A stretch of DNA of 64,000 bases from Rebecca billardiae RCC1528 (GCA_965240325.2 OZ251243.1:372001-436000), one strand, 5' to 3'; positions 16,247-32,172 are shown, counted from the stretch's first letter. Numbers and translations are program-made. Notes: generated by a model from the sequence alone, not told the origin.

Positions 16247-18231
16247 TCAGAGGCCAGCACGCCGCTGCCCTGGCAGGTTGCGCCCGCGCGGCGCCGACGC
16301 GCCGCCGCTCGCCGGCAGGTAGCTGTACGGCTGGCGCGGCGCCGTGTCAGCCCCGCCCTGCTTCCACGCGCTCGAGGCGGGCGTGGTCGCCGCCAGCGCT
16401 GGGTCGATCGCGGCGCGCGGGCGCGTGCCCGCGCGGCGCGCCGGCGCGCGGCCGGCGGCGCCGCCGGGCAGTGCGTCATGGCGGTGGGCCCACGTGCGCA
16501 GCGCCGGAGGCAGCTCGGCCGCGCCGCGGTGGTACGCGCCGCCTTCCGCCGCCTGCCAGTCAGGCAGCCTGTCGCCGCCGCCGCCGTGCGCGCCGCCGCC
16601 GCCGTGCGCGCCGCCGCCGCCGTGCGCGCCGCCGCCGCCGTGCGCGCCGCCGGCGCCGCCGCCGGCGCGCGGCCCCGGCCGCGCCGGCATGCGGCGCGGC
16701 AGCGCGGCGCGCGCATACGCGTCGTCGTCGTCCTCCGCTGCGCCCGGCGGCACGCTGAGCCTCGGCAGGACGAGGTCGTGGCGCTGTCCCCACGTCTGAA
16801 GCGCGGGCGGCACATCAACAAGGCACACGGAGCGCTGCGCGTCGCCCCCGTACTCCGCGCCGTACCCGCCGCCGCCGCGCGCGCCACCGCCCGGCGCGAG
16901 CCGCGCCGCAGCCTCGTGCGCGCGCGCCGCGGCGTGCACTGTGCTTGAGATCCGGCGCGCGGCAGACTCCGCGTCCCACGCGAGGCGCCAGCGCCGGCGC
17001 GCGATCGCGGCGAGGCTGAGCCGGCGGTGCTGCGGGATGGCCGCCGCCGCGCACGAGTGCAGACCCGCCAGCCAGCAGAGCGCCTCTTCGGAAGAGTCGC
17101 ACACACAGCGGATCCACGAGGGCGGCGGCGGCGGCTCGGAGCGGCCACCGCCGTAGTCAGCATGGCCGCCGCCGCGGGCAGCATGGCCGCCGCCGCGGGC
17201 AGCATGGCCGCCGCCGCTTGCGCTTCGCGGCGCCTGGAGGAAGAGCTCGAAGCAGCGGAGCGGCGAGTGCGGCAGCGTGCCGCCCGCCGACGGCCACCCG
17301 ACCGCGACCGCGCGCACCGCGCGCAGCGGCAGCGACACGCCGTCGAGCACGATGGCGTCTTCAGTCGAGCTCAGGAACGCCCATGCGCGCAGCGCGCGGC
17401 CAGAGCGAAGAGCGGGCGCGGCGCGCGCCGCGTGCAGCATCGCGCGCGGCGAGCTGGGCGAGAGCGCGGTGGGCGAGCGCGCGGTCTCGAAGGGCTCGAA
17501 GCGCGGCGCCGAGCCGCCCGGCGGGCTGCGCAGCTCCGCCGCCGCCGCCGCCGCGTCGTCGATGGCCGCGAGCGCGCGCCACACCGAGGCCGCCAGTGGC
17601 CCGCCGGCCGCGCCGCCGTCGAGCGCCGCCCCCGTGACGGTGAGCCATCCGCCGTGCTGCAGCGCGGCGCGCATGCGCGCGAGCGCGCTCGTGCGCGGCG
17701 AGGCGGGCGGCGGGCCGTCGCCCCCGCGGCCCGAGGGCACGAAGAGCCGGCGGTTCGCCTCCGCCTCCGCCTCGGCCTCGCGCGCGGGCGCGGGCGGTGT
17801 CGGGCGCGGCTGCGGCGGCGCCCGCGGGCGGCGCGGCGGCGGCGCCTCAGCCGGTGCTGGCTGCACTGTGATGGCTGGGATGGGCGCGGCGGGGGGCGGC
17901 GAGGGCGGCTCGCGGTGGCGCGGCCTGGGCGGCGGCGGCGAGCGCGGCGGCGGCGGCGGCGCCGCGCTCGGCCTCGGCTCCGTCGGCTTGGGCGGCGGCG
18001 AGGCCGCCGGCGGCGTCGGCTTGCGCGCCGCCGCCGCCGCCGCCGCCGCCGGCCGCGGCGGCGGCGGCGCGCTTGTCAGCCAAGCCAGGGCCATCGCCGC
18101 CGCCACCGACGCGGCCGAGCCTGCGCCCCACAGCGCGAACGCGAGGGCCTCGGCGGCGGCGCCGGGCGGCGCGCCGCCAGCCGCCGCGCCCGCGAGCAGC
18201 GAGCGCCGCGCCCCGCTCGGCGCGCCGCCGC

Positions 18232-18269
<38 letters not shown>

Positions 18270-19339
18270 GCGCGCGGCAGCAGCGGCGCCAAGCTAGGCG
18301 CGCCGCCGCCGAGCGCGCGCGCGCTGAGGAGGAGAGCGGGGCCGAGCGCGGCGAGGGCGAGGAGCGCGAGCACGCGCCAGTCGGCGCCCGGCGCGCGCGC
18401 GCGCCACGCGCCGCGCGCCACGCACGCGCACGCGCCGAGCGCGGCGGCGGTGCGCAGCGCGGCGCCGAGCACCGCCGCGGCTGTCCCCACGTCCGCGCCG
18501 CCGCCGCCCGAGCGGCCGAGCGCGGCGGCGCACGCGCCGTGCTCGCCGCACGCGGCCGTGCCGAAGCCGTCGGCGAGGGCGGCGAGCGCGAGCAGCGCGA
18601 GCGCCGGCGCCGCCACATCCAGCCGCCGCCGCCGCACCGCCTCGCCGAGGCCCGCGCCGCCGCCTCCGTCGCCGCCTCCGCCGCCGTCGGCGGCCGCGTC
18701 GGCGCCGCCGCCGTCCGCGCCGCCGTCCGCGTCGGCGCCGCCGCCCTTGCGCCCAAAGCGCGCAGCCAATTGACCCTTCGGCGTGGGGACGGGCGAGAAG
18801 GGCACGGCGACGCTCAGCGCGGCGGCGGCCGCCGAGCCCGGCGCCCCCGTGCCGCCCGGCCGCAGCAGCACGCCCGGGTACGCCGGCTCGTGCGTCCGAG
18901 ACCAGGCGATGCCGAGCGCGGCGGCGAGCGCGCACGCGCACGCGCACGCCGCCCAGTCCGCAGCGCCAAGCGCGCCGAGCGCCGCCGCGCCGCCTGAGCA
19001 CATGGCGGCGAGGCCGAGCGCGTGCGCGAGGCCGATGCCGAGCAGCGCGCACGCCGCCCACGCCGGCTCCGCGAGCGCGCCCGTCTCCGCCTCCGCCGCG
19101 CCGCGCCGCGCGCGCCGCGCCGCGCCGCGCCACGCCAGCACAGCCGCGCCGGCAGCGCACGCCGCGGCCGCGAGCGCGGCGCGCGCCGCCGCCTCGGCAA
19201 CAAGTGGCGCCGCGCGCGCGCGTGCGTGGTGCAGCGAGGCGGAGGCGACGTGCTCGAGCGCGCCGCGCGCGCCGCCGCCCGCGAGCTCGCCCGCCGCCGC
19301 CGCCGCCGCGGACAGCAGCACGTCGACCCCCAGCCCGAG

Positions 19340-19372
<33 letters not shown>

Positions 19373-22300
19373 CTCCGCGCCCGCCGCTGTGCTTGCCGCC
19401 TCGGCGGTGCAGCGCGCGAGTGCCGCGCGCGCGCCGCGCAGCTCGACGAGCGGGAGCGCGAGCACGGCGCCGGAGGCGGCGCGCCGCGCGCACGGCGGCG
19501 GGAGGGTCGCGGGCAGCTCCACCTCCCCCCGCCGATCCCAGCCTCCCTCCACGCCGCCACCGCCGCCCGCCGCCGCCGCGGCCGCGGCCTCAACCGCCGC
19601 CGCCACGTCAGCCGCGCGCGCGTGCGCGCCCGAGACTGCCGCGCCGCCGCCCGGCACGCGGGCCTCCCAGCTCGGGAGCAGCAGCGGCGGCGGGCGCGGC
19701 GGCGTGCACCCTTCGCCGTACAGCTCGAAGCCGCCGCCCCCGCCCTCGCCCAGCGACCACGACCAGCCTGCGCCACCGCCCGCCGCGCCCGCCATGGCCT
19801 CCGCGTCCGCGTCCGCGCCCGCGTCCGCGCCCGCGCCCGCGTCCGCGTCCGCGTCCGCGCCCGCGTCCGCGTCGTGCGCGTGCGCGGCGCGCGCCCACCA
19901 GCGGCGGAGCAGCGGCGGCGCCACACCACCACCACCCTCGCCGCCCACCGGACTCGCGTCCGGACCGGCCGCGCCGACGAGCCACGCGCCGGCCGCGCCA
20001 ATCAAGCCGCCGCCGCCGCCGCGCCGCGCGCCGCCCGCTGTATGCACCCAGGGCCCCGCGGCCGCGCCGGCGCGCGCGCGCCAGCCGCCCGCGGCGCCGA
20101 GCGCGCGCGCGCGCGCGCGCGCGTCGGCCGCGCAGGCTTGCTCATCCTCCCCCGCGCCGCCGCCGCCGGCCGCGGCGGCCGCATCGTCAGGCGCCGCGCG
20201 CACTGCGAGTGCCAGCCGCGCGGCCGGCGGCCCCGGCAGCCATCCCTGGGCGTCCGCGTCCGCGCGCGCGGCGGAGAGCGCCGCCTCCGCCGCCTCCGCC
20301 GCGGGCGCGGGGACGGCGAGCGGCGACGACGCGGCGGCGGACGCCGCCGCGCCCGTGCCGCCCGCGCCGCGCGCCGCCCACCCGTCGTCCGCCCCGGCGG
20401 CGGCGGCGCGCGCGCGCACGTGCACGCTCAGCGCGACGCGTGCCGACGCCGCCAGCGGCCACGGCAAGCTCGGCTCGGGCTCGGGCGGCGCGTCGCCCTG
20501 CGGCTCCGGCGCGCGGCCCGCCGCCTCGGCCGCGTCGGTGCCGTTCGCGCCGGCGCCGGCGCCGTCGGCGCTCAGCGCGAGCGCGCGGCCCGCGCCGCTT
20601 GCGCCGCTCGCACCGAGCGCTCCAAGCGCGCGGCCCGCGCCGCGCGCGCCGCTCGCGCCGAGGTCCGCGCGCAGCTCAAGTGCCGAGCCCGCGGGCGTGG
20701 GCGCGAGGTCGAGGCGCGTGCGCACCGCGATCCCGCGCGGCGCCACGGCGAGCGCGCACAGCGTGCCCACCGCCGCGCTCGCCGCGAGGCACGCGAGCAG
20801 CGCGCACGCGAGCGAGCGCGCCGACAGCGAGCGCGCGCGCACGGCCGACAGTGCGGGCGGCGGCGGCGGCGACGGCGGCGGCGCGGAGGCGGCGCGCGGC
20901 TTGGTAGGGTGGGCGTGCGCGCGCGCGGGCGGCGCGAGCACGAGCGTGTACACCGCGCCGCGCTTCACCGCGCCCGCCGTGCCCAGCGCCAAGCCCACCA
21001 CCGCATCCGTGACGGCCGCCGCCCGCGCGTCCGCGCCGCCGCCGCCATCCGCGCCGCGCGCGCCGCCGCCCGCGCCGCCGCCGGCGGCGCCGCCGGCCGC
21101 CGCCGCCGCGAGCGCGGCGCGCAGCGCGGCGGCGGGCTGAGTCTCGGGCGCGGCGCGCGCGGCGCGCACGGCGCGCGCGAGCGCCCACGCGCCGCGCGCC
21201 GCGCCGCCGCTCGCCTCCGCCACGTCCGCCCACACGCGCCACGCGCCGCGCGCGGCGGCGCGCGCGGCGCCGAGCGCGGCGCGCGCCGCGCGCGCGTGCG
21301 CGGCCGCGTCGGCGGCGAGCTGCGCCCAAGCCTGGGCGCAGAGCGCGAGGGCGAGCGCGCTGACGAGCAGCCCGCCGCCGCCGCCGTCGTACGCGCCGGG
21401 CCCCGCCTCCCCCGCGCCGAGCGCGAGCGCGCCGAGCGCGGCCGCGCAGCCGAAAGCCATTGTCAGCAGCAGCGCGCGCGCGCGCAGCGCCAGGCGGCCG
21501 CCAGCGGTGGAGTGCGCGGCAGCGCGCGCGGCCACGGCCACCTCGGCGGCGCAGGCGAGGGCGGCGAGCGCGGCGGCGAGGAGCGGCGCGAGGCGCAGGC
21601 CCGCGCGCGCGCCCTCCACGCTCACGCCCACCGCGACGCACACCACCGCACCGCGCGCGTGCGCCGCGGCGCGCGCGCGCACAGCGGGCGCGCCGTGCGC
21701 CGCCGCGCCCGCGTCTGGCAGGGCGCAATTGGCGCGCGCGAGCGCGGCGCGCGCGCGCGCGGCCGCGCCGTCGAGGTCGAAGTCGTCGTCGTCATCGGCG
21801 GCGGCGTCGTCGGCGGCGTCAGCGGCGTCGGTCGGCGCCGCGCGGCCGAGCGCGCGCCGCGTGCGCCGCACGCCGCCGTCCGACGCCGGCGCCTCGGGCG
21901 GCGCGCGCCACGCGCCGAGCGCGGCGCCGAGCGCGGCCGCGCGCGCCGCGGCGCGCGCGCGCCACGCCGCGCCCGCGCCCGGCGGCGGCGGCGGCGGCAG
22001 CGGCTCCCAGGCGAGCAGCGAGACGGTGCGCCACAGCAGCGCGAGCTCCGCCGCGGGCCAGAGCGCGCACGCGAGCGCGCCGACCACTATCATCGCCACG
22101 TGCGCACCACTCGGCCCCGCGCCGTCGCCGCCGTCGGCGTCGGCGTCGGCGTCCGCGTCTGCGCGATCGGCGGCGGCGGCGCCGCCGCCCGCGCCGCCAC
22201 ACGCGAGGGCGGCGCCTGCGGTGCGCATGGCAACAGCCGGGAGGCCGAGGGCGAGGGCGAGGAGGAGCAGGCGCAGCGTCACGTGCCCCACGCGCGTGTG

Positions 22301-23628
22301 CGCGCGCGGCGCCGCACCCGGCCCGCCGACCAGCGCGAAAACCGCCGCCGCCGCCACCGCGCCTGCGCCCAGCGCCGCGCCCGCCGCCCACGCCACCGCC
22401 GCCAGCGAGCGCGCGAGCGGCGCGGCGGCGCGCGCGCACGCGCCGCCGCCCGCGGCGGCGTCGTCGTCGGCGCGTTCGCGCAGCGCGCGCCGCGCGCCGC
22501 GCCCTGCCGCCGCCCCCGACGCCTCCCGCTCCCACGCGCGCTGCGCCGCCCACGCCTCCGCCGCCGCGGCCGCATCCGAGCCGGCGCCGCCGCCGTCCGC
22601 GCCGCCGCCGCCGCCACCGCCGCCCAGCACACTCCAGCGCACGGGCCATCCGAGCGCGCGCGCCGCGCCGTGCGTGTGCGTGGGCTCGCCGCCGAGCCGG
22701 CCTCCGAGCGCGGCGAGCTGCGCGGCGGAGAGCAGAACGCCCACGCCCACGCCCGGCTGCCCGGACGTAACCGACGACGTAACCGACGTGAGCAGGCTCA
22801 AGGCCCCACCAAGGGCGAGAGCCGCGCTTGTGACAACGCCGAGCGCGCGCGCCGCGCCACGGCCGAGCTCGGCGGCGGCGAGCGCGCGCGGCGCGATGCG
22901 CACGCGCGCGTGCAGCGTGGCGCGCGCGGTGGCGGGCGCGGCGTACAGGCCGCACATGCCGCCGTCACTCAGCGTGAGCTCGAGCGCGCCGAGCCCGCCC
23001 TCGCCGCCCGCCCTCGCCGCGCGCAGCAGCACCACTCCAAGGGCCGTCGCCACCGCGTCCGCTCGGCCGGCGAGACGCAGCGCTGCCGCGGGGCCAAGGG
23101 GGCGTCCGTCGTACCGGCCGCCGGGCGCGTCGAGCGGCACCCAGCCGTCGTCGGGCGCGGGGCGCGCGGGCGCGAGCAGCGTGCCGTTCGCGCCACCCGC
23201 GCCCTCGCCGCCGCCGCCCTCGCCGCCGCCGCCGCCCGCCGCCGCGGCCGCGCGCACGCTCGCGCGCAGCGCGCGCGCCGCGCGCCGCGGCAGCCGGAAT
23301 GCAAATTGCTCCGAGCTCAGCGTCACGACGAGCGGTTGGGCGTCGGGCGGCGCGGCGGCCCAGTCGCGGCCTGCGGCGAGGTGCGCGTGCGTGAGCGTCG
23401 GTCGCGGGTCTGACCCCTCCGCCGCCGCCTCCGCCGCCTCGCCGCGCGCGCCGCCCGCGTGCGCGCGCGCCCACTCTGCAAGGAGCGCGCCGCACGCGCG
23501 GCCGTGCGCGCCGCCGATAGTCAGAGGCGAAAGTCGAGTCCAGCTCGCGCCACCCACGACGTGCGCTGGCGACCAGCCGTCGTCGTCGGCATCGTCGGCG
23601 TCGTCGTCGGCTCCGCCGCCGTCGTCCG

Positions 23629-23659
<31 letters not shown>

Positions 23660-25666
23660 ACGCGCCGCCCCGGGGCGCTGCCAGCCCGGCGGCGCGCGAA
23701 TCGTCGGCGGCGCGTGCGCGGGCAGCAAGGGAAATAGGAGCGAGCTGGGCGTGGCGGCGGCGCGCTCTGTCCACGCCCACGGCCCGAGGGCGAGGGAGGC
23801 GACGGAGGAGGTGTCGTGCGCGTCGGCGGGCGCGTCGGCGGACCACATGCCCGCCGACCCCGCTGATGCGAGCACCGCCGCGCGGAAGATGAGCGAAGCG
23901 AAAGGCGCGTCCGCGTCCGCGGCGGCCGCCGCCTGCGCCGCATCTGCCGCCGCCCGCGCGGCCGCGCGGGCGCCGTCGCCGCCACCGCCGCCGTTGCCGC
24001 CGCCGTCGCCGCCGCCGTCGTCGTCGGCGGCGGCGCCGGCCGCCCCGAGAATGGCCGGCCGCCACACCACGCCGGGCCAGCCCTCGAGTGCGCGCGCCGC
24101 CCCGGCAACCGCCGCCTCGCCGCGCGCCGCGAGCGTGCGCGCACTTGAGCCGCGCGGCAGCGGCCGCGCGGCGGGCGGCGCGGCCTCCAGTGCTGAGCCC
24201 GCCGCCACCGGCGCGCCGAGTCCCGAGCAAGTGCCGCCGTCGGCGGGCGCGCCGTCGTCGGAGGCGGCGCCGCGGACGCGCGCGTGCACAGAGCCCTCCT
24301 GCGCGCGCGGCACCTGCTCGACGCGCACGCGCGCCGCCGGCGTTGCCGTGACGGCGTATCGGCGGCCGCCGCCGCCGCCCGCGGCCGCGTCCGCCGCGCC
24401 GCCCGCGTCGACGACGAGCTCAAGGGTCCAGACGGCGAGCTCGGCGGTGGGCGCGTCGTCGCCGTGCGGGCCCGGCGCGTGGTCGGTGATCACGAGCGAC
24501 CACACGCCCGAGAGCGGCCGCCCGCGCAGCCGCGCGCCGCCCTCGCCGCCCTCGCCGCCCGCGCCGTCCGCGGCGGCTGCGAACGTGCCGACGGGCGCGC
24601 AGCCGGCTGCGGCGCGCGGCGCGGCGCCGCACGCGCGCTGAGCCGGGCAGAGGGCGCAGAGCGCACGCTCGTCGAGCGGCGGGAGCGCGCCGCCCGCGCC
24701 CTCGCCCTCGCCCAGCACGAACTGCAGCACGAGCGCGTCCGCGCCGCGCGCGCCCTCCGCGCCCGCGCCCGCCGCATCCACGCCCGCCGCGGGCGCCGCG
24801 CCGTGAACGGCAGCCGCGCCCGCGGCGCCGGCCGCGAGCAGTGTGAAATTGGCGTCTGGCGCGCCGCGCGCGGCGTCGTTGAGCTCGCGCCAGCGCGCCC
24901 ACGCGTCGTCGCCCGCGCCCTCCGCCGGCGCGGGCGGCACGGGCTGGTGCCGCAGCGTGATGCGCAAGTCCCCCGCGCGCGCGTGCGTCAAGCCGTGAAG
25001 CCTCACAACGGCCGAGCGCACGGTCGCGGCCGCGGCCGCGGCCGCGGGGAGCCCCTCCGGGCGCGCGCGCACGGCGAGCGGCCAGAGGAGCGCGTGCGAG
25101 GCGCAGTGGAAGGCGTGCGGGATCGCGTCGGGCAGCAGCACGCGCGGCACCAGCCGCACCGCGCCCGAGCACTCGCCCAGCGCCGTCGGCGCGCCGAGCG
25201 CGAGCGCGCGCGGCGCGCCCGGCGCCAACTCGGCACATTCGTGCTTAGCGACAGTCGTGAGCGATCGGCCGCCGAGCAGCGCGGCGCTGTCGAGGAGCTG
25301 GTCGCCGCCGTCGCCGAGGAGGACGAGCATCGAGTGCGTGCCCGCGCGCGCGGGCAGCGAGCCCGAGAGCACCGGCGTCCAGCCGTTGTACTGCACGTCG
25401 TATTTCTGCAGCTGCCGGCCCTGGCTAGTGTCGGCTGCGACGGCGGCGGCGGCGCCGACGTCGGCCGCGGCGGCGGACGGCGCGGAGGCGGGCGCGTTGA
25501 GCGTGATGGCCGCGCGGTCGCAGCCGCCGTCGCAGCCGAACGACGCGGTGCTCAGCGCGCCGCCGCGCCGCGTGAACTTGACCGCCACGCCGTCGATGAA
25601 GACGCCGAGCGCGTCGCCCGCGCCGGCGGCGGCTGAGCCCGCGGCCGAGCCGCCGGCGCGCTGCGA

Positions 25667-25697
<31 letters not shown>

Positions 25698-26212
25698 AAT
25701 TCCTCGGAGGCGAGGACGAGCGAGAGCTCGACGATGGCGTCCTCGCGCAGGGTGAAGCCGAAGCGCAGCCACGCCACGTCGATCAGCGGCTCGGCGAACG
25801 CGCGCGCGGCGGCGGGCCAGCCCTCGTGCGCGGCGGCCGCCTTGACAGTCGCGTGCGCCGCGTCTGCGTCCCAGCAGATGGTGCCCGAGGCCTCGGGGTT
25901 GTCGTTCGGGCCGGCGGCGGCGGAGGCGAAGCCCGTCGAGAGGATCACGCCCGACTCCACGCCGACCGAGCCGCGCCCGTCCTCGAAGAAGGCGAGCTGC
26001 TGCGGCGCAAAGCCGCCCGCGCTCACCGGCACCTCCGAGTCAGGCGCCAGCTCGACGCCCGCGCCGACGAGCGCGCTCGCGAGGTCGCGCGCCGAGCCGA
26101 AAGGGCGGGTCCGGAGTGCTGCGGCGGGATGCGCGCACGCAGCCAGCGCGCACGCGAGCCAGCCGCCGCCGCCGAGGCGGCGGCGTCGCGGCGCGAGACA
26201 GCCGCTGCCCAT
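16247..26212 (-). CDS. Giant secretory multi-pass membrane protein (3321 aa): choice-of-anchor L + P-domain + TM blocks + PH-like domain
   Basis: Uninterrupted 9966-nt ORF with signal peptide WLACALAACAHPAAA. Choice-of-anchor L motifs GVILSTG..ASEEF..DALGVFIDG..VQYNGWTPVL..GDGGDQLLDSAALL. P-domain motifs LTHARAGDLRITL..GVWSLVITD..WTLEL. Many hydrophobic helices. PH-like CFELFL..CDSSEEALCWLAGL. Confidence 0.8.
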
Positions 26213-27204
26213 GCTGGGCAGGCTCGGCCGATGAACGGTGCAAGCAGAGCCGAAAGAAAGTGAGCAAGGGCCGCCGCGCTGCCGCTTTCAGCTTGCTAAT
26301 GTGATGCACGGTTTTGGCCCAAAGTGGACGAAAGTCGAGTATCTGCTCGTCCCAAAAGTTTACCCGCATAGATGCCGTAACGGCCGGCGGCATCTCGCGC
26401 GCACGATGGCGGACTTCAAGCCCGCCCGGGCTGGGCCCATCAAGACCGGAAGGAGCCAAGGCCAAGTGGCGCCGCGCGCTCGCGCGCTGGCTGCTTCGCC
26501 GTCAGCGGGGAGGTCGCAAGAGTACCTGGCTCACTCGCGGTCGCCCTGTTGCCGAGCCTGCGCGCGCTCGCAAGCCCTTGCAGGCGCGCTCCCAAGTACA
26601 AGCACCGGGCCGGCAGCTTATGACCGCGCAGGGCCCATCGCGCCTGCAAGGGCTTGCGCGTGCGTCCTGCGTCTCTCCCTCGCCGCAGAGACCATGCCCC
26701 GTCCGAAAGCCATTCCGCATGGCTTGCCGCCAGCCGGCGCGCGGCGGTGGCGCATGCAGCACAGGATGGCTGGCTGCCAAGTGCATGCGCCCTGCAAGGG
26801 CTGCTCCGCGGGCCGACTAACGGATCCACAACGCCAACGTGCGCGGCTGGACCCGGCCACGCGTCCTCCGTGCGCGCATAGGTGCGCGTCCTCGCGTGCC
26901 TCTGCAGTCTGGATGGGCGTCGTCATGCGCACGCCTCGTCGTGCCTGCACGCCGTCGATTCGCGTTACAATTTGATGAGCGATCATCGATGAATCGATGA
27001 CAGACAGGACTAGCGGCATGCAACAAAAGATTACGGAATGGCCCTTTTACCCCGCTTGAGCATACTTCACAGAATCAGCCTTCGTCGGTACAGTAATGTC
27101 GTACAATATTGTAAGGTACCCACCCGCCCGAGCGTCGCGGGACCCGCTCGGGCGATCCCGAGGGAGGCCGACCTGCCCGGTGCGGGGGCCACGGGCGTCG
27201 CCCC

Positions 27205-29608
27205 ATGCCGGCGGCGACGGCGACGCACGCGGCCACACCGGTGCCGTGGGGCCCGGTGGGCGTGGTGATCGCGTGCATCTTCGCCGACGCGCTCAAGATG
27301 ATGCTCGTCTTCCCCTTCCTCCCCTTCATGGTGCGCGACCTTCTCGGCACCGGGGCGGAGAGCGCGGTCGCGACGTACGCGGGCCTGCTCGCGGGCGCGT
27401 ACAAGATCGGGCAGTTCGTGCTCGCGCCGGCGTTCGGCTACTTCGCCGACGCGTTCGGCCGCCGGCCGCCCATGCTCATCGCGATGGCCATCGGCCCCGT
27501 CATGCTCGTCCTCTTTGCGACCGCGCCGACCTTCCGCCTCGCGTTTGTCTGGCGGCTGCTGCAGGGCGCGGTCTCGGGCAGCGTGACGGTGGGCAAGGTG
27601 TACCTCGCCGACGTGACGGACGCGTCGAACGAGGCGCGCGTCTTCTCGTACGTCGGCCTCGCCATGGGCCTCGGCGTCGTCGTCGGCCCGACGATCGGCG
27701 GCCTGCTCGCCCGGCCGTGCGTGCAGTACCCCGGCGTGGCGCTCTTCGACCCGGCGCGCACGCCGAGCGGCCGGCTGTTCTCGCGCTTCCCGTACCTGCT
27801 GCCGTGCCTCTGCTCGGTCGCGTGCTCGCTCACCAACCTCGTCAGCTCGTGGTTCCTCCTTAAGGAGAGCCACCCCGAGTTCAGGCGCGTGGGCGGCGGC
27901 TGGCGAGCGCAGCGGCGGCGCGCCGCTCCGAGGGGAGGGCGCGAGCTGAGGGCGGCGGCGGCGCTGGACGACTCGGACAGCGGGGGACGCGGCACGCTCG
28001 CGCGCGTGCAGGAGCCGCTGCTGCCGCAGAGCATGCGCGGCGGCGGCGCGCCCGCCGCCGCCGCACCCGTCGTCGCGGGGCTCGAGCGCGCAGACTCTGC
28101 GGCGTCGGAGCCGCTGCCGCCGCAGGCGCGCTGCGGCCCGCCGCCACCGCTCTCCGGCGGCGGCGGCAGCAGCGCCGAGCTGCTGGGCGGCGGTGCGGCG
28201 GTGCACCCGGCGCCGGGCGTGGCGTCGCTCCCGCCGCACCGCGCCTCGCTGCGCTCCGCCGCCCGCTCGCGCACCGTCGCCGCCGAGGGCCCCGGCTCCG
28301 CCGCGGCGCTCGCGCAGAGCGAGGCCATGCGCCTCGTGCGCCGCTCACTCTCACGCACGTCCACGCAGCCGGGGCTGCTGCTGCAGCGCGGCGAGTCGTC
28401 GCTGGACATCATCGACATCAACCCGGCGCAGGCGTCGGACTGGCTGCGGCAGGAGGGCGAGCGGCCGACCACGCTCCCGCTCGTCGCCGCACGACAGCTC
28501 GTGCGCGGAATCTCGAGGCTCACCATCGCCGCGCTCGCCGGCGGCGCCGAGCACGGCGGCGGCGCCGCCGCCGGCGCGCCAGCCTGTGCCTTGGCCGAGG
28601 ATGGCGCGGCGCCGGCCAAGGCGCACCAGGCGGGTGGCGTCGGCGCCGACGCGTCGGCGGCGGACGGCGTGCCGCCCGCGAGCGCCGAGCAGAACGGCGC
28701 CGCCGCCGGCGCGGCCGCCGCGCGGCAGCGGTGGCGGCTGTTCTGGACTCTGCAGACGATCCAAGTGCTCTTTACTCTATCGGGCAACGGGCTGGCGGAA
28801 GTCCTGCCGGTCCGGATGTCCGCGCCGCCCAAGCACGGCGGGTACGCGCTCTCGGCGCGCGAGATCGGCGCGACGCAGGCGGTGGGCGGGCTCGCGCTGC
28901 TCCTCGTCGTGCTCTGCGTCTTCTTCCGCTTCGTCAAAATGGTGGGCGCGGTGCGCGCGCTGCACACCGGACTTTTCGCAAACGCACTCGTCTTTGGGTT
29001 TCCTCTCGGGGTCGACGTGTTCGTGGCGGCGCACGGCGCGCCCGGCACGCCGGGCGGGCCCGGGCGCCGCGCGCTGGCGGTGGTGTTTGCGCTCACGTGG
29101 GCGGTGCGCGCCTTCTCGCTCAACACGGTGCGCGCGCGCGCGCGCGCCGCTCGGCTGCGTGCGTCCGCGCGCCGCCGGCGCCGCACTGCCCGCCCGCGCC
29201 CGAGTCGTCAGCCCTTCCGAAGAGGCACGCGGGCGCGCCGCCGCGCGTCGCGTTGGCCTCCGACGCCTCGTGCTCCCCGGCGCGCCTGCGCCCGCGCCGC
29301 GCGTCCCCGCCGCACAGTCCAACTCGTGCTCCGTGCTGCTCTCGAAGGGGTGCCTGCCGCGCTCGATGCTCGGCTTTGGGCTCGGCGTGAACCAAGCGGC
29401 CTCCTCTTTGGGCAACGCCCTGGGGCCGGTGCTGTCAGGATGGCTGTATACGGCCGCGCTCGACCTGGGCCCACGGCTGCCGCCCTGCCTGGCGCAGGGG
29501 CGGCTGTACTTTGTGCTGGGCGGAGGGATCGCGCTGCTGTCGAGCGCGTGCGCGTGCCTGCTCCCGCCGTGGCCGTGGGAGCGAGCCGCCGAGCCCGGCG
29601 CGTGTTAA
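27205..29608 (+). CDS. Major facilitator superfamily transporter (ZIFL/TetA-like); one intron 29128-29317
   Basis: Motif A GYFADAFGRRP, YLADVTD, GVVVGPTIGGLL, FSRFPYLLP. Removing the GT..AG intron restores C-terminal helices (GNALGPVLSGWLY). Confidence 0.9.
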
Positions 29609-30282
29609 AGCGTCAGGGCGCCCGCGGCCGGAGAGAGTAGAGGCGCGCGAGCGCACTGGCGCGTGTCCGCCGCGCCTGCGGACCTTGTAGTTCGGGAAGA
29701 ACGGCGGTGACCCGCTCAGCGTTGCTGCCATCGTTGCTGCTGCCACTGATGGCGCGCTCGCGGCACGAGTGGTCGTCGGCCCGGCGGAAGCCGACCGCCC
29801 TGCTGAGTGCTGTCGCTCGGACGATCTCCCGGGGACAGGACCGTCCGGCAGAGTGCCGAACAAATGGCGACGGACTGCCGACGAGTAATACCCTGACGAC
29901 GTCGACGACGACAACAACGCGACATCCACCATGGCGACCAACATCAACGTGCTCACACCACTGCCACTGCTGCAAGCTTCGACCAGTACCACTACAGACG
30001 AATCAGGAGAGCTGCGCCCTCGTGCCTGTGTCTTTTTAAAATCATAGATAGACGAATTAGTATGCGCGCGAGTTCCGCTGTGCGCGCCTGTGCCCCCTCG
30101 AGCCCGCGAGCCACCGGACTGGACGATCCGACGATGGATCCGACCAACCGTGGCCGAGCAACCGCGCGAGGAGGGTGCGGGCTCAGACCAACACGCACGC
30201 CGCGCAGCTGCGCCTCGCAACGCTCGGCGGCGCCCTCGCTGTAAGCAGCTGCTGCAGCGTCGACCCTCGTCACGCCGTGCCG

Positions 30283-32172
30283 ATGCCGTCCAGTGCCGCA
30301 TCGGCGCTGCTCGCCGAGGCAAAGGCGCGCGCAGTGAAGATGCGCGCCCCGCCAATATGCGCCAAGGTATTGAGCACACTGCTCGCAGCGCTGCGTGCCG
30401 AGCTTCTGGACAGGGAGGAGGTGATCACGGCGCTCGTCCCTTTCGCCGCTTATTCAGTGCTGTATTTCGGTGACCAGGAGATCATCGATTCGCAGGCTCT
30501 GCCGGGGCTGGTGCAGCTCGCGTCCAGCGGCACCGCCGAGGTGCAGGCGGCTGCGCTGCGCGCCATCTGCGTTTTGTCTAGCATGAGATCGGGTGATGAT
30601 GTGTGCGGGATACGCGCCGGGTTCGAGTCCCTTGGCCTCATCCCGCTGCTCGTGTCGCTGCTGCGGTCGCAGGACGAGGGCGTGCAGCACCCGGCTGCTG
30701 GCGCGCTGCGCATGCTTGCAGATGATCCGCACCATGCGATCATTGAGTCGGGCGCGATCCCGCCGCTCGTGTCGCTGCTCCGATCTCCAAACGAGGACGT
30801 GCAGGTTTCGGCGGCATCGGCCCTACACGAAGCGGTCGAAAGTCTACCACTCGAGGATGGCCTGGCGGAGATGTGTGAAGCACTCGTGGAAGCGGGCGCG
30901 ATCCAGCCGCTCGTGACACTGCTGGGGGATCCTCGCGTGTGCTTGCACAAGCTGGCAGCAGGCATTTTCAGCGAAACGGCCCATGAGGAGTTGGTGCGGG
31001 CGCAGCTCATCGAGGCGGGCGGCATACAGCCGCTCGTGGCGCTGCTCGGCTCTGCAGATGCTGGCGTGCAGCACGCTGCAGCAAATGCAGTCCGCATGTG
31101 CGCCAGTGACTCGGAAGCGACATGCCGCTCGATCGTGAGCCACGGGCTCTGTGAGCGCCTCGTGCCCCTGCTGCTGGGCGTGTGCGATGGCTCTGCGCAC
31201 GTGTGGACGTTTGCAGTGGAAGCGCTGGCGCACGTCATTGAGCAGCCCGGCGCGCACCGAGCAGACATTGCACGCGCGCCTGGGCTGGTCAGCGCGCTGC
31301 AGCACGCGCTGCACAGCTGTGACGTGCTCATCGCAGACAATGCCCCTGGTATTCATGCAAGGGCGGCAATTGCACGCGCGCAACAATTTGCTGCGCTGCG
31401 CGCTCTCAAGGGCCTGCTATGCTGCAATAACGACGATCTGCTGCACCGCGCGTGCGCCTCCGCAGGCAAGGCACACACACAGCTCGCCGACAGCGAGGCT
31501 GAGCTGCGCCGCTCGCACGCGCGGCTGTGCTCGCTGGGCGACACGGTGGGCGAGCCCACGCGGCAGCACGACGTGGTGCTGCGGTGCGCGGACGGCACCG
31601 AGCTGGGCGCGAGCCGGCTGCTGCTGGCGCAGCACTCGCAGTACTACGAGCGGCAGCTGGGCGGCGGACTGGCGGAGGGCAGCCAGCGCGAGCTGGCCGC
31701 TGACCCTGACTTCAGCTCGGCAGCGCACGAGGCGCTGCTGCGCCAGCTGCACTCGGCGGGCGTGGCGCCGCTGCCGGACGAGACGTCCGTGCTGCTCGAG
31801 CTGGCCCGGCTGGCGTGCAAGCTGCTGCCACCGCCACCACCCGAGGGCTCGGAGGCGCCCGCTGCCGATGCGGCCGGTGACGTGCTTGTGGACGTGGCGC
31901 TTCGCTGCGAGGACGCGCTGCTCGCCGGGCTGGACGTGGACAACTGCCTCGACCTGCTGCGGCACGCCAAGGCGATGGGCGGGTGTCCGCGGCTCACAGA
32001 GGCCGTGCGCGCGCTCGCCAGGGAGCAGGTCGAAACACTCACGAAGCAGGAACGCTGGGCTTCGTTCAAGCGAGAGGACCCCGCCGAGGCGCTCGAGCTG
32101 ATGGAGACGCTGGCGTTGGACATGGCCAACCCTGGCCGCATGCCGTCCAGCAAGCGCAAGCGGCGATCATGA
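30283..32172 (+). CDS. Armadillo-repeat + BTB/POZ protein, paralog 1 (ARIA-like CUL3 adaptor)
   Basis: ARM repeats (GAIPPLVSLLRS, GGIQPLVALLGS). BTB HDVVLRCADG..ASRLLLAQHSQYY. BACK-like LDVDNCLDLL. C-terminal NLS KRKRR. Confidence 0.85.
   Translation: MPSSAASALLAEAKARAVKMRAPPICAKVLSTLLAALRAELLDREEVITALVPFAAYSVLYFGDQEIIDSQALPGLVQLASSGTAEVQAAALRAICVLSSMRSGDDVCGIRAGFESLGLIPLLVSLLRSQDEGVQHPAAGALRMLADDPHHAIIESGAIPPLVSLLRSPNEDVQVSAASALHEAVESLPLEDGLAEMCEALVEAGAIQPLVTLLGDPRVCLHKLAAGIFSETAHEELVRAQLIEAGGIQPLVALLGSADAGVQHAAANAVRMCASDSEATCRSIVSHGLCERLVPLLLGVCDGSAHVWTFAVEALAHVIEQPGAHRADIARAPGLVSALQHALHSCDVLIADNAPGIHARAAIARAQQFAALRALKGLLCCNNDDLLHRACASAGKAHTQLADSEAELRRSHARLCSLGDTVGEPTRQHDVVLRCADGTELGASRLLLAQHSQYYERQLGGGLAEGSQRELAADPDFSSAAHEALLRQLHSAGVAPLPDETSVLLELARLACKLLPPPPPEGSEAPAADAAGDVLVDVALRCEDALLAGLDVDNCLDLLRHAKAMGGCPRLTEAVRALAREQVETLTKQERWASFKREDPAEALELMETLALDMANPGRMPSSKRKRRS

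Follow-up and report, generated by a model that had tools for sequence, protein, structure and literature searches.

A divergent choice-of-anchor L domain in a predicted giant membrane protein of Rebecca billardiae

Gene and protein layout

A 64,000-nucleotide stretch of Rebecca billardiae RCC1528 (GCA_965240325.2 OZ251243.1:372001-436000), hereafter the window, was analysed for one exceptionally long gene on its minus strand. The gene is a single-exon open reading frame (ORF) at 16247-26212 with an ATG start and 3,321 codons plus a stop, and its product is composed of 29% Ala and 16% Gly. Exact-sequence look-up of the 3,321-amino acid (aa) protein returned no record. The window lies on contig C26 of an assembly that totals 72 Mb in 41 contigs. 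Nothing in the gene resembles human, viral or toxin sequence. From the N- to the C-terminus, followed by the flanking spacer, the features are as follows.

16247-26212, minus strand: whole single-exon ORF
26114-26212, minus strand: signal-peptide-like leader, aa 1-33, with an Arg run, a short hydrophobic core and Ala-x-Ala, recognised by eye from the translation
25253-26101, minus strand: choice-of-anchor L domain, aa 38-320, matched by NF038133 and containing two Ala-rich inserts
24413-25039, minus strand: P-domain-like stretch, aa 392-600, with a profile match at aa 562-597 only and interrupted by an extended Ala/Gly insert
22883-24412, minus strand: low-complexity stalk, aa 601-1110, presumed extracellular, containing no hydrophobic segment
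20738-22846, minus strand: hydrophobic block 1, aa 1123-1825, with 8 candidate membrane helices
19193-20737, minus strand: large hydrophilic loop, aa 1826-2340
18068-19192, minus strand: hydrophobic block 2, aa 2341-2715, with 6 strong candidate helices and 1 weaker
17633-18067, minus strand: Pro-rich linker, aa 2716-2860, after the last hydrophobic segment; the paralogue described below has a linker at the same position
16958-17440, minus strand: conserved C-terminal domain, possibly PH-like, aa 2925-3085, common to the paralogue
17123-17233, minus strand: aa 2994-3030, a Gly/His repeat insert that lies within the C-terminal domain, overlaps an in-frame 21-bp minisatellite and is lacking in the paralogue
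16250-16957, minus strand: low-complexity C-terminal tail, aa 3086-3321, containing the in-frame repeat 16573-16658
26213-27204, no strand: lower-GC intergenic spacer of ~1 kb between the giant ORF and a divergently oriented MFS transporter gene (start at 27205, plus strand)

The coding status of the ORF was assessed by stop counts, base composition and codon usage. No internal stop was present in the ORF frame, compared with 8-33 in the other five frames and about 18.5 expected from the position-specific base composition of the ORF itself (P ~1e-8). The same was observed for the low-complexity middle (aa 621-2850; 2,230 codons), in which no stop was found versus 2-16 in the other frames. The guanine-cytosine (GC) content was 79-87% across the ORF stretch versus a 60-70% background, fell sharply immediately upstream of the ATG and immediately downstream of the stop, and kept the codon-position register GC3 > GC1 > GC2 along the entire ORF. 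Codon usage was modelled on two further genes of the window that have Pfam support; applied to 450-nt windows, the model chose the ORF frame among all six in 42 of 43, the sole exception being the Pro-rich linker. The period was a multiple of three in 10 of the 11 tandem repeats with at least 90% matches, and no intron-type low-GC or phase-shifted stretch was seen in 300-nt windows along the ORF. No start precedes M1 in the open frame, and the upstream stop lies only 25 codons before it.

Because the GC content is so high, long open frames come easily, and antisense frames are open for up to 1,471 codons. Plus-strand ORFs that overlie the gene, such as window 19022-23413 (plus strand), reach 1,463 aa. 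Given the preference of the codon model for the minus-strand frame and the 8-33 stops over 10 kb, these antisense ORFs look like by-products of GC3-rich minus-strand coding. The sequence properties lead to the conclusion that 16247-26212 is one continuous coding exon, in which short in-frame introns are formally possible. The single 10-kb intronless gene of the original prediction, an earlier reading of the window from its sequence, is thus upheld by the uninterrupted frame, the codon model, the GC falls at both ends and the pairing of head and tail in a paralogue.

The choice-of-anchor L head and the P-domain-like stretch

The N-terminal piece was matched in two stretches by the NCBIfam model NF038133 at 53.8-54.1 bits (curated cut-off, 27 bits), and the whole protein at 44.8 bits. 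For homologue detection, a full HMMER scan was carried out with aa 36-620 against 1.84 billion representative proteins. Only 40 relatives of the head were recovered (best E 8.4e-10; identity ~25-32%; length 250-890 aa), all aligning to the choice-of-anchor L part alone, with alignments that reached into each half of the domain (query residues 2-139 and 220-330). NF038133 was present in 40/40 of these relatives, accompanied by PEP-CTERM in 8 and by type IX secretion system (T9SS) sorting domains in 4; PKD, SprB or Calx-beta repeats were found in others. The three relatives with a source name are all bacterial (two entries of one Cyanobacteriota protein and one Chitinophagales protein), and the remaining ones are unnamed metagenome proteins.

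The 40 relatives share 51 columns with a conservation of at least 80%. The window head was identical at 33 of these, and all four invariant columns were kept (G88, G94, D304 and D308). AlphaFold 2 (AF2) modelling of the head with a multiple sequence alignment of the relatives gave a beta-sandwich with a predicted local distance difference test (pLDDT) score of 75.8 and a predicted template modelling (pTM) score of 0.77. The N-terminal domain was confirmed as a genuine, divergent member of the choice-of-anchor L family. The original prediction had placed a ~280-aa domain of this type at ~26100-25270, with STG, ASEE, Q-Y-x-G-x-T and GD-xx-DS motifs and an ancestry among bacterial surface proteins. 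The domain scored at twice the family cut-off, the motifs are present in the window head, and the relatives, with their PEP-CTERM and T9SS partners and bacterial source names, agree with that ancestry. The signal peptide that it had proposed ahead of the domain is in keeping with the signal-peptide-like leader features read from the sequence.

The bacterial choice-of-anchor L proteins resemble the window protein in the N-terminal position of the domain after a signal peptide, in the family motifs and in the four invariant columns. They differ in that a sorting signal is theirs, whereas the window protein is encoded by a eukaryote and is predicted to have a cytosolic tail and ~15 hydrophobic helices; its length is 4-13 times that of the relatives found. 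No match to bacterial sorting-signal hidden Markov models (HMMs), including PEP-CTERM, T9SS, LPXTG and similar, was obtained for the window protein in Pfam and NCBIfam scans. The sorting signal is a feature of the bacterial proteins and not of the choice-of-anchor L domain itself.

Downstream of the head, a proprotein-convertase P-domain had been proposed at ~25020-24415. The Pfam model PF01483 matched aa 562-597 at 13-15 bits (E 0.027-0.11; cut-off, 21 bits), covering profile positions 55-85 of 86 only, and a strand-like motif upstream at ~aa 395-415 fits a P-domain by eye. A sequence search of the PDB with the P-like piece gave nothing credible. Single-sequence AF2 modelling of aa 1-620, with no homologues for the P-like part, yielded a pLDDT of 35 and, with regard to a jelly-roll fold, only a two-strand hairpin at aa 570-598. 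A P-domain in the window protein is possible: the partial, sub-threshold match to PF01483 survives from the proposal, and a match at cut-off strength or to a PDB chain does not.

When the genome was scanned with PF01483, an unrelated locus was recovered and the window P-like stretch was not. The locus, at C37:709316-709624 on the minus strand (L009:1501-1809), is the sole above-threshold P_proprotein match in the genome (28.9 bits). The match follows a signal-like leader in the N-terminal region of an open frame of 1,608 codons, and the portion of that frame that was read showed no peptidase. No relation between this P-domain and the window P-like stretch was found by BLASTP.

The paralogue, the C-terminal domain and the membrane blocks

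An own-genome search with the PH-like piece of the window protein led to a second locus on contig C37, at C37:828759-831065 on the plus strand (L005:4760-7066; ORF, L005:4760-7063), identified by own-genome search and BLASTP. It encodes a 768-aa paralogue. A signal peptide opens this protein and is followed by a degenerate choice-of-anchor L domain, a Gly-rich spacer and one membrane helix; after an Arg/Lys cluster come a Pro-rich linker and, last, the C-terminal domain. By BLASTP, the heads of the two proteins were aligned at E 3e-6 (window aa 43-112 versus paralogue 37-104) and the tails at E 3e-9 (aa 2947-3080 versus 585-685), the two matches being collinear. Own-genome searches with the window tail, the paralogue tail and a two-tail profile recovered only these two loci. 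The comparison shows a conserved head-tail pair and, as judged from these sequences, a two-member family in the genome, and it provides an independent argument that the window ORF is one gene. A word-based protein search with the paralogue and its region 555-700 found no relative.

The two proteins agree in the succession of signal peptide, choice-of-anchor L-type head, membrane helix or helices, Pro-rich linker and C-terminal domain. The paralogue differs in its degenerate head, in having one helix instead of ~15, and in having none of the giant's P-like stretch, long stalk, loop or Gly/His tail insert. Since its single helix is followed on the C-terminal side by positive charges (Arg/Lys), the paralogue head is predicted to lie outside the cell and the tail in the cytosol.

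The Pro-rich linker that had been expected before the C-terminus is present, and the C-terminal domain is conserved in the paralogue. Its proposed identity as a PLC-type PH-like domain (~17385-17055) was examined by several approaches. Pfam PH-family HMMs gave no match at E <= 10 with the window or the paralogue tail, and no PH chain was found when the PDB was searched with the tail by phmmer and by profile. In the ESM Atlas, the ten best family-bearing matches of the tail all belonged to the PH clan (including ELMO-type PH_12, PH_14, PH and ISP), with scores of at most 0.86, below the level that counts, so that they serve as a lead only. When the two-tail profile was compared by hhalign with 14 PH domains of the same genome, 21 columns were aligned in register (P 0.007; probability, 5.5%; control P 0.97). 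Of the seven strands and the C-terminal helix with a conserved Trp that characterise PH domains, the alignment covered only the final strand and the Trp helix. A PH-like fold of the tail is given roughly even odds on these comparisons; the ESM Atlas lead and the local hhalign match speak for it, and the Pfam and PDB searches against it. A rhodanese match in the PDB (20.8 bits, E 0.002) that arose among the searches with the P-like and PH-like pieces was regarded as chance.

Two in-frame minisatellites lie in the C-terminal region. They lie at 16573-16658 (18 bp x 4.8 copies, 98% matches) and at 17143-17217 (21 bp x 3.6 copies, 92% matches), and both encode Gly/His-rich repeats. The second is inserted in the conserved tail domain, which suggests that it expanded recently.

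Hydrophobic segments were defined as 19-residue windows with a Kyte-Doolittle value of at least 1.7. Fourteen such segments were found, versus 3.3 +/- 1.6 in whole-protein shuffles. All 14 fell in two clusters, at aa 1110-1830 (8 segments) and aa 2335-2725 (6 segments), with a weaker extra segment at aa 2689-2715, whereas the ectodomain (1,077 aa), the loop (506 aa) and the tail (597 aa) had none. This clustering exceeds what chance would give, and the two transmembrane bundles with a loop between them in the original prediction are in keeping with this arrangement. Its TRP_C/FLC-like start of the first bundle was not sustained: the fungal TRP/FLC family PF06011 gave no Pfam match at E <= 10, including with pieces over aa 1105-1400 and beyond. 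No match to any channel, transporter or receptor family of Pfam or NCBIfam was obtained at E <= 10 with the whole protein or pieces of it, and the ESM Atlas returned nothing for block 1 (score 0.79, recognition 1473). Block 2 matched only itself in the genome. When the two membrane-plus-loop halves were compared by BLASTP, no sign of an internal duplication emerged; two similar short Leu-Ser-Ala-rich motifs occur at ~aa 1158 and ~aa 2298.

A weak own-genome match to aa 1317-1374 was noted at C29:478338-478514 on the plus strand (L032; 24.6 bits; 58 aa at 50% identity). The match falls within an open frame of 1,048 codons and probably reflects low-complexity similarity.

Two further genes were observed beside the giant ORF. 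The divergent MFS transporter gene occupies window 27205-29640 on the plus strand as an 811-codon ORF, of which aa 23-169 only are matched by MFS_1; the rest is probably intron or GC-driven read-on. At window 30175-32169, on the plus strand, an ORF encodes four Armadillo repeats (113.6 bits) followed by a BTB/POZ domain (24.7 bits).

Origin, proposed function and meaning

No relative of the whole architecture was found, either by word-based search or in the HMMER scan with aa 36-620, in which only the choice-of-anchor L part was matched. Viral contigs yielded no relative, and neither did metagenome contigs when the pair of tail domains was the query. Word-based searches with the whole protein and with aa 1-620 also returned none; these were probably swamped by Ala/Gly words and do not count as evidence of absence. 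The chimera that had been proposed, a choice-of-anchor L ectodomain joined to membrane segments and a separate C-terminal domain, is supported by the layout, and no full-architecture relative emerged to contradict the view that it is new among described proteins.

A quick tree built from head-domain sequences joined the copies of the alga weakly (Shimodaira-Hasegawa-like approximate likelihood-ratio test, SH-aLRT, 72). Both copies sit on very long branches, and no clade could be named as the donor; they are each other's closest relatives at 32% identity. It is plausible from these comparisons that the head was gained from bacteria and was then duplicated and diverged fast in the algal lineage, with no donor nameable. 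The horizontal acquisition put forward in the original prediction keeps its plausibility through the bacterial-type relatives, and a donor cannot be assigned at a best E of 8.4e-10, ~30% identity and such branch lengths.

No mention of choice-of-anchor L was found in the literature searched. For other classes, the choice-of-anchor A domain has been described in diatom Trailins, for which transfer from bacteria was proposed (bioRxiv 10.1101/2023.03.06.531300), and in the Jonah lectins of Acanthamoeba (PMC6541295), and choice-of-anchor I has been described in metazoan MSP130, with horizontal transfer proposed (PMC11878542). These proteins are precedents for the window protein, in that a eukaryote carries a bacterial choice-of-anchor surface domain in a protein exposed outside the cell. 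They differ in carrying the unrelated classes A and I, not L, and in being secreted or glycosylphosphatidylinositol (GPI)-anchored without a cytosolic domain, whereas the window protein is predicted to be multi-pass. What is new here, as far as the sequence comparisons indicate, is the choice-of-anchor class (L), the host and the fusion to predicted membrane helices and a conserved, putatively cytosolic domain.

Adhesion-type animal receptors combine a binding head on a stalk with a multi-helix membrane part and a cytosolic tail. The window protein is like them in overall logic only. It shows no sequence or HMM relation to them and no match to GAIN/GPS or seven-transmembrane (7TM) domains, and it has two helix blocks.

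It is considered modestly probable that the gene encodes a lineage-specific giant surface membrane protein, a receptor for adhesion or sensing whose head is a bacterial-type domain. The signal peptide would send the N-terminus outside the cell, where the choice-of-anchor L beta-sandwich, then possibly a P-domain-like sandwich, would be displayed on the long Ala/Gly-rich stalk. Two clusters amounting to ~15 hydrophobic helices, as judged from hydropathy, would lie in the membrane with a 500-aa loop between them, and the Pro-rich linker would lead to the conserved cytosolic C-terminal domain, possibly PH-like. The head, presumably acquired from bacteria and later duplicated within the algal lineage, may bind an external ligand, most likely a glycan or the surface of another cell; this proposal rests on the bacterial relatives being surface proteins and on the lectin- or carbohydrate-binding module (CBM)-like fold, and on nothing else. 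The linker and the tail may engage cytosolic partners or the inner membrane leaflet and so couple the binding of the head to the cell interior. The protein would act as a receptor for adhesion or sensing and as neither an enzyme nor a channel.

Several observations weigh against the receptor proposal. The helices were called from hydropathy alone in a protein of 29% Ala, which makes the helix number, and hence the topology, uncertain, and the P-domain and PH-like calls lie below every curated threshold. The paralogue head reached only 11 bits on NF038133, over profile positions 2-112. Several mid-domain Asn/Asp columns conserved in the bacterial domain differ in the window head, so that its binding properties may have changed or been lost. 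No orthologue was found outside the genome that would allow selection on the 2,200-aa low-complexity middle to be measured.

A passive surface coat or matrix anchor, in which the head and stalk would be structural or adhesive, the membrane blocks would merely hold the protein and the tail would be non-signalling, is rather unlikely. The bacterial relatives are surface-anchored proteins of unknown function and most of the window protein is of low complexity, as such a coat would allow, but the C-terminal domain and Pro-rich linker are kept in both paralogues, which points to a cytosolic function beyond anchoring, and the paralogue is anchored by one helix, leaving ~15 helices unexplained.

Over-extension of the ORF, either through in-frame introns or because the middle is a GC-driven expansion under little or no selection, with a working protein resembling the 768-aa paralogue, is quite improbable. 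The ease with which high GC opens long frames, including the antisense frames of up to 1,471 codons, would fit this explanation, as would the many in-frame micro- and minisatellites, the failure of any search to find a homologue of the middle and a paralogue showing that the family works with a single helix. It is opposed by the 2,230 middle codons with 0 stops versus 2-16, throughout which codon periodicity and the codon model hold the frame, by hydrophobic segments that are grouped in two clusters and not scattered, and by 300-nt windows free of intron-type low-GC or phase-shifted stretches.

A TRP/FLC-type ion channel or transporter gated by the ectodomain is highly improbable: the two multi-helix blocks with large loops and a motif resemblance noted in the original prediction, for which no HMM support was found, stand against the lack of any channel or transporter match in Pfam or NCBIfam at E <= 10, the empty ESM Atlas result for block 1, the absence of an internal duplication by BLASTP and the single helix of the paralogue. 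Of the chimeric cell-surface receptor or channel originally envisaged, the chimera is thus retained, and the channel is left with no family match and a single-helix paralogue.

In a bolder and distinctly doubtful extension of the receptor proposal, the haptophyte lineage would have wired a captured bacterial surface-protein domain to a cytosolic PH-like module by way of membrane helices and a Pro-rich linker, giving rise to a two-member, eukaryote-specific receptor family in which the multi-pass core of the giant could conduct or transport upon ligand binding.

The wider reach of the finding is limited, as most of the protein is of low complexity and no relatives of the full protein were found outside the genome. 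If the receptor proposal is true, this would be the first choice-of-anchor L domain found described in a eukaryote, and a bacterial-type surface domain would be placed in a transmembrane protein with a cytosolic tail, unlike in the secreted Trailins or MSP130. The minimal and giant paralogues would then constitute a natural experiment in which a single-pass receptor grows into a multi-pass one under extreme GC pressure, and the 768-aa paralogue would offer a compact and tractable family member for localisation and binding studies.

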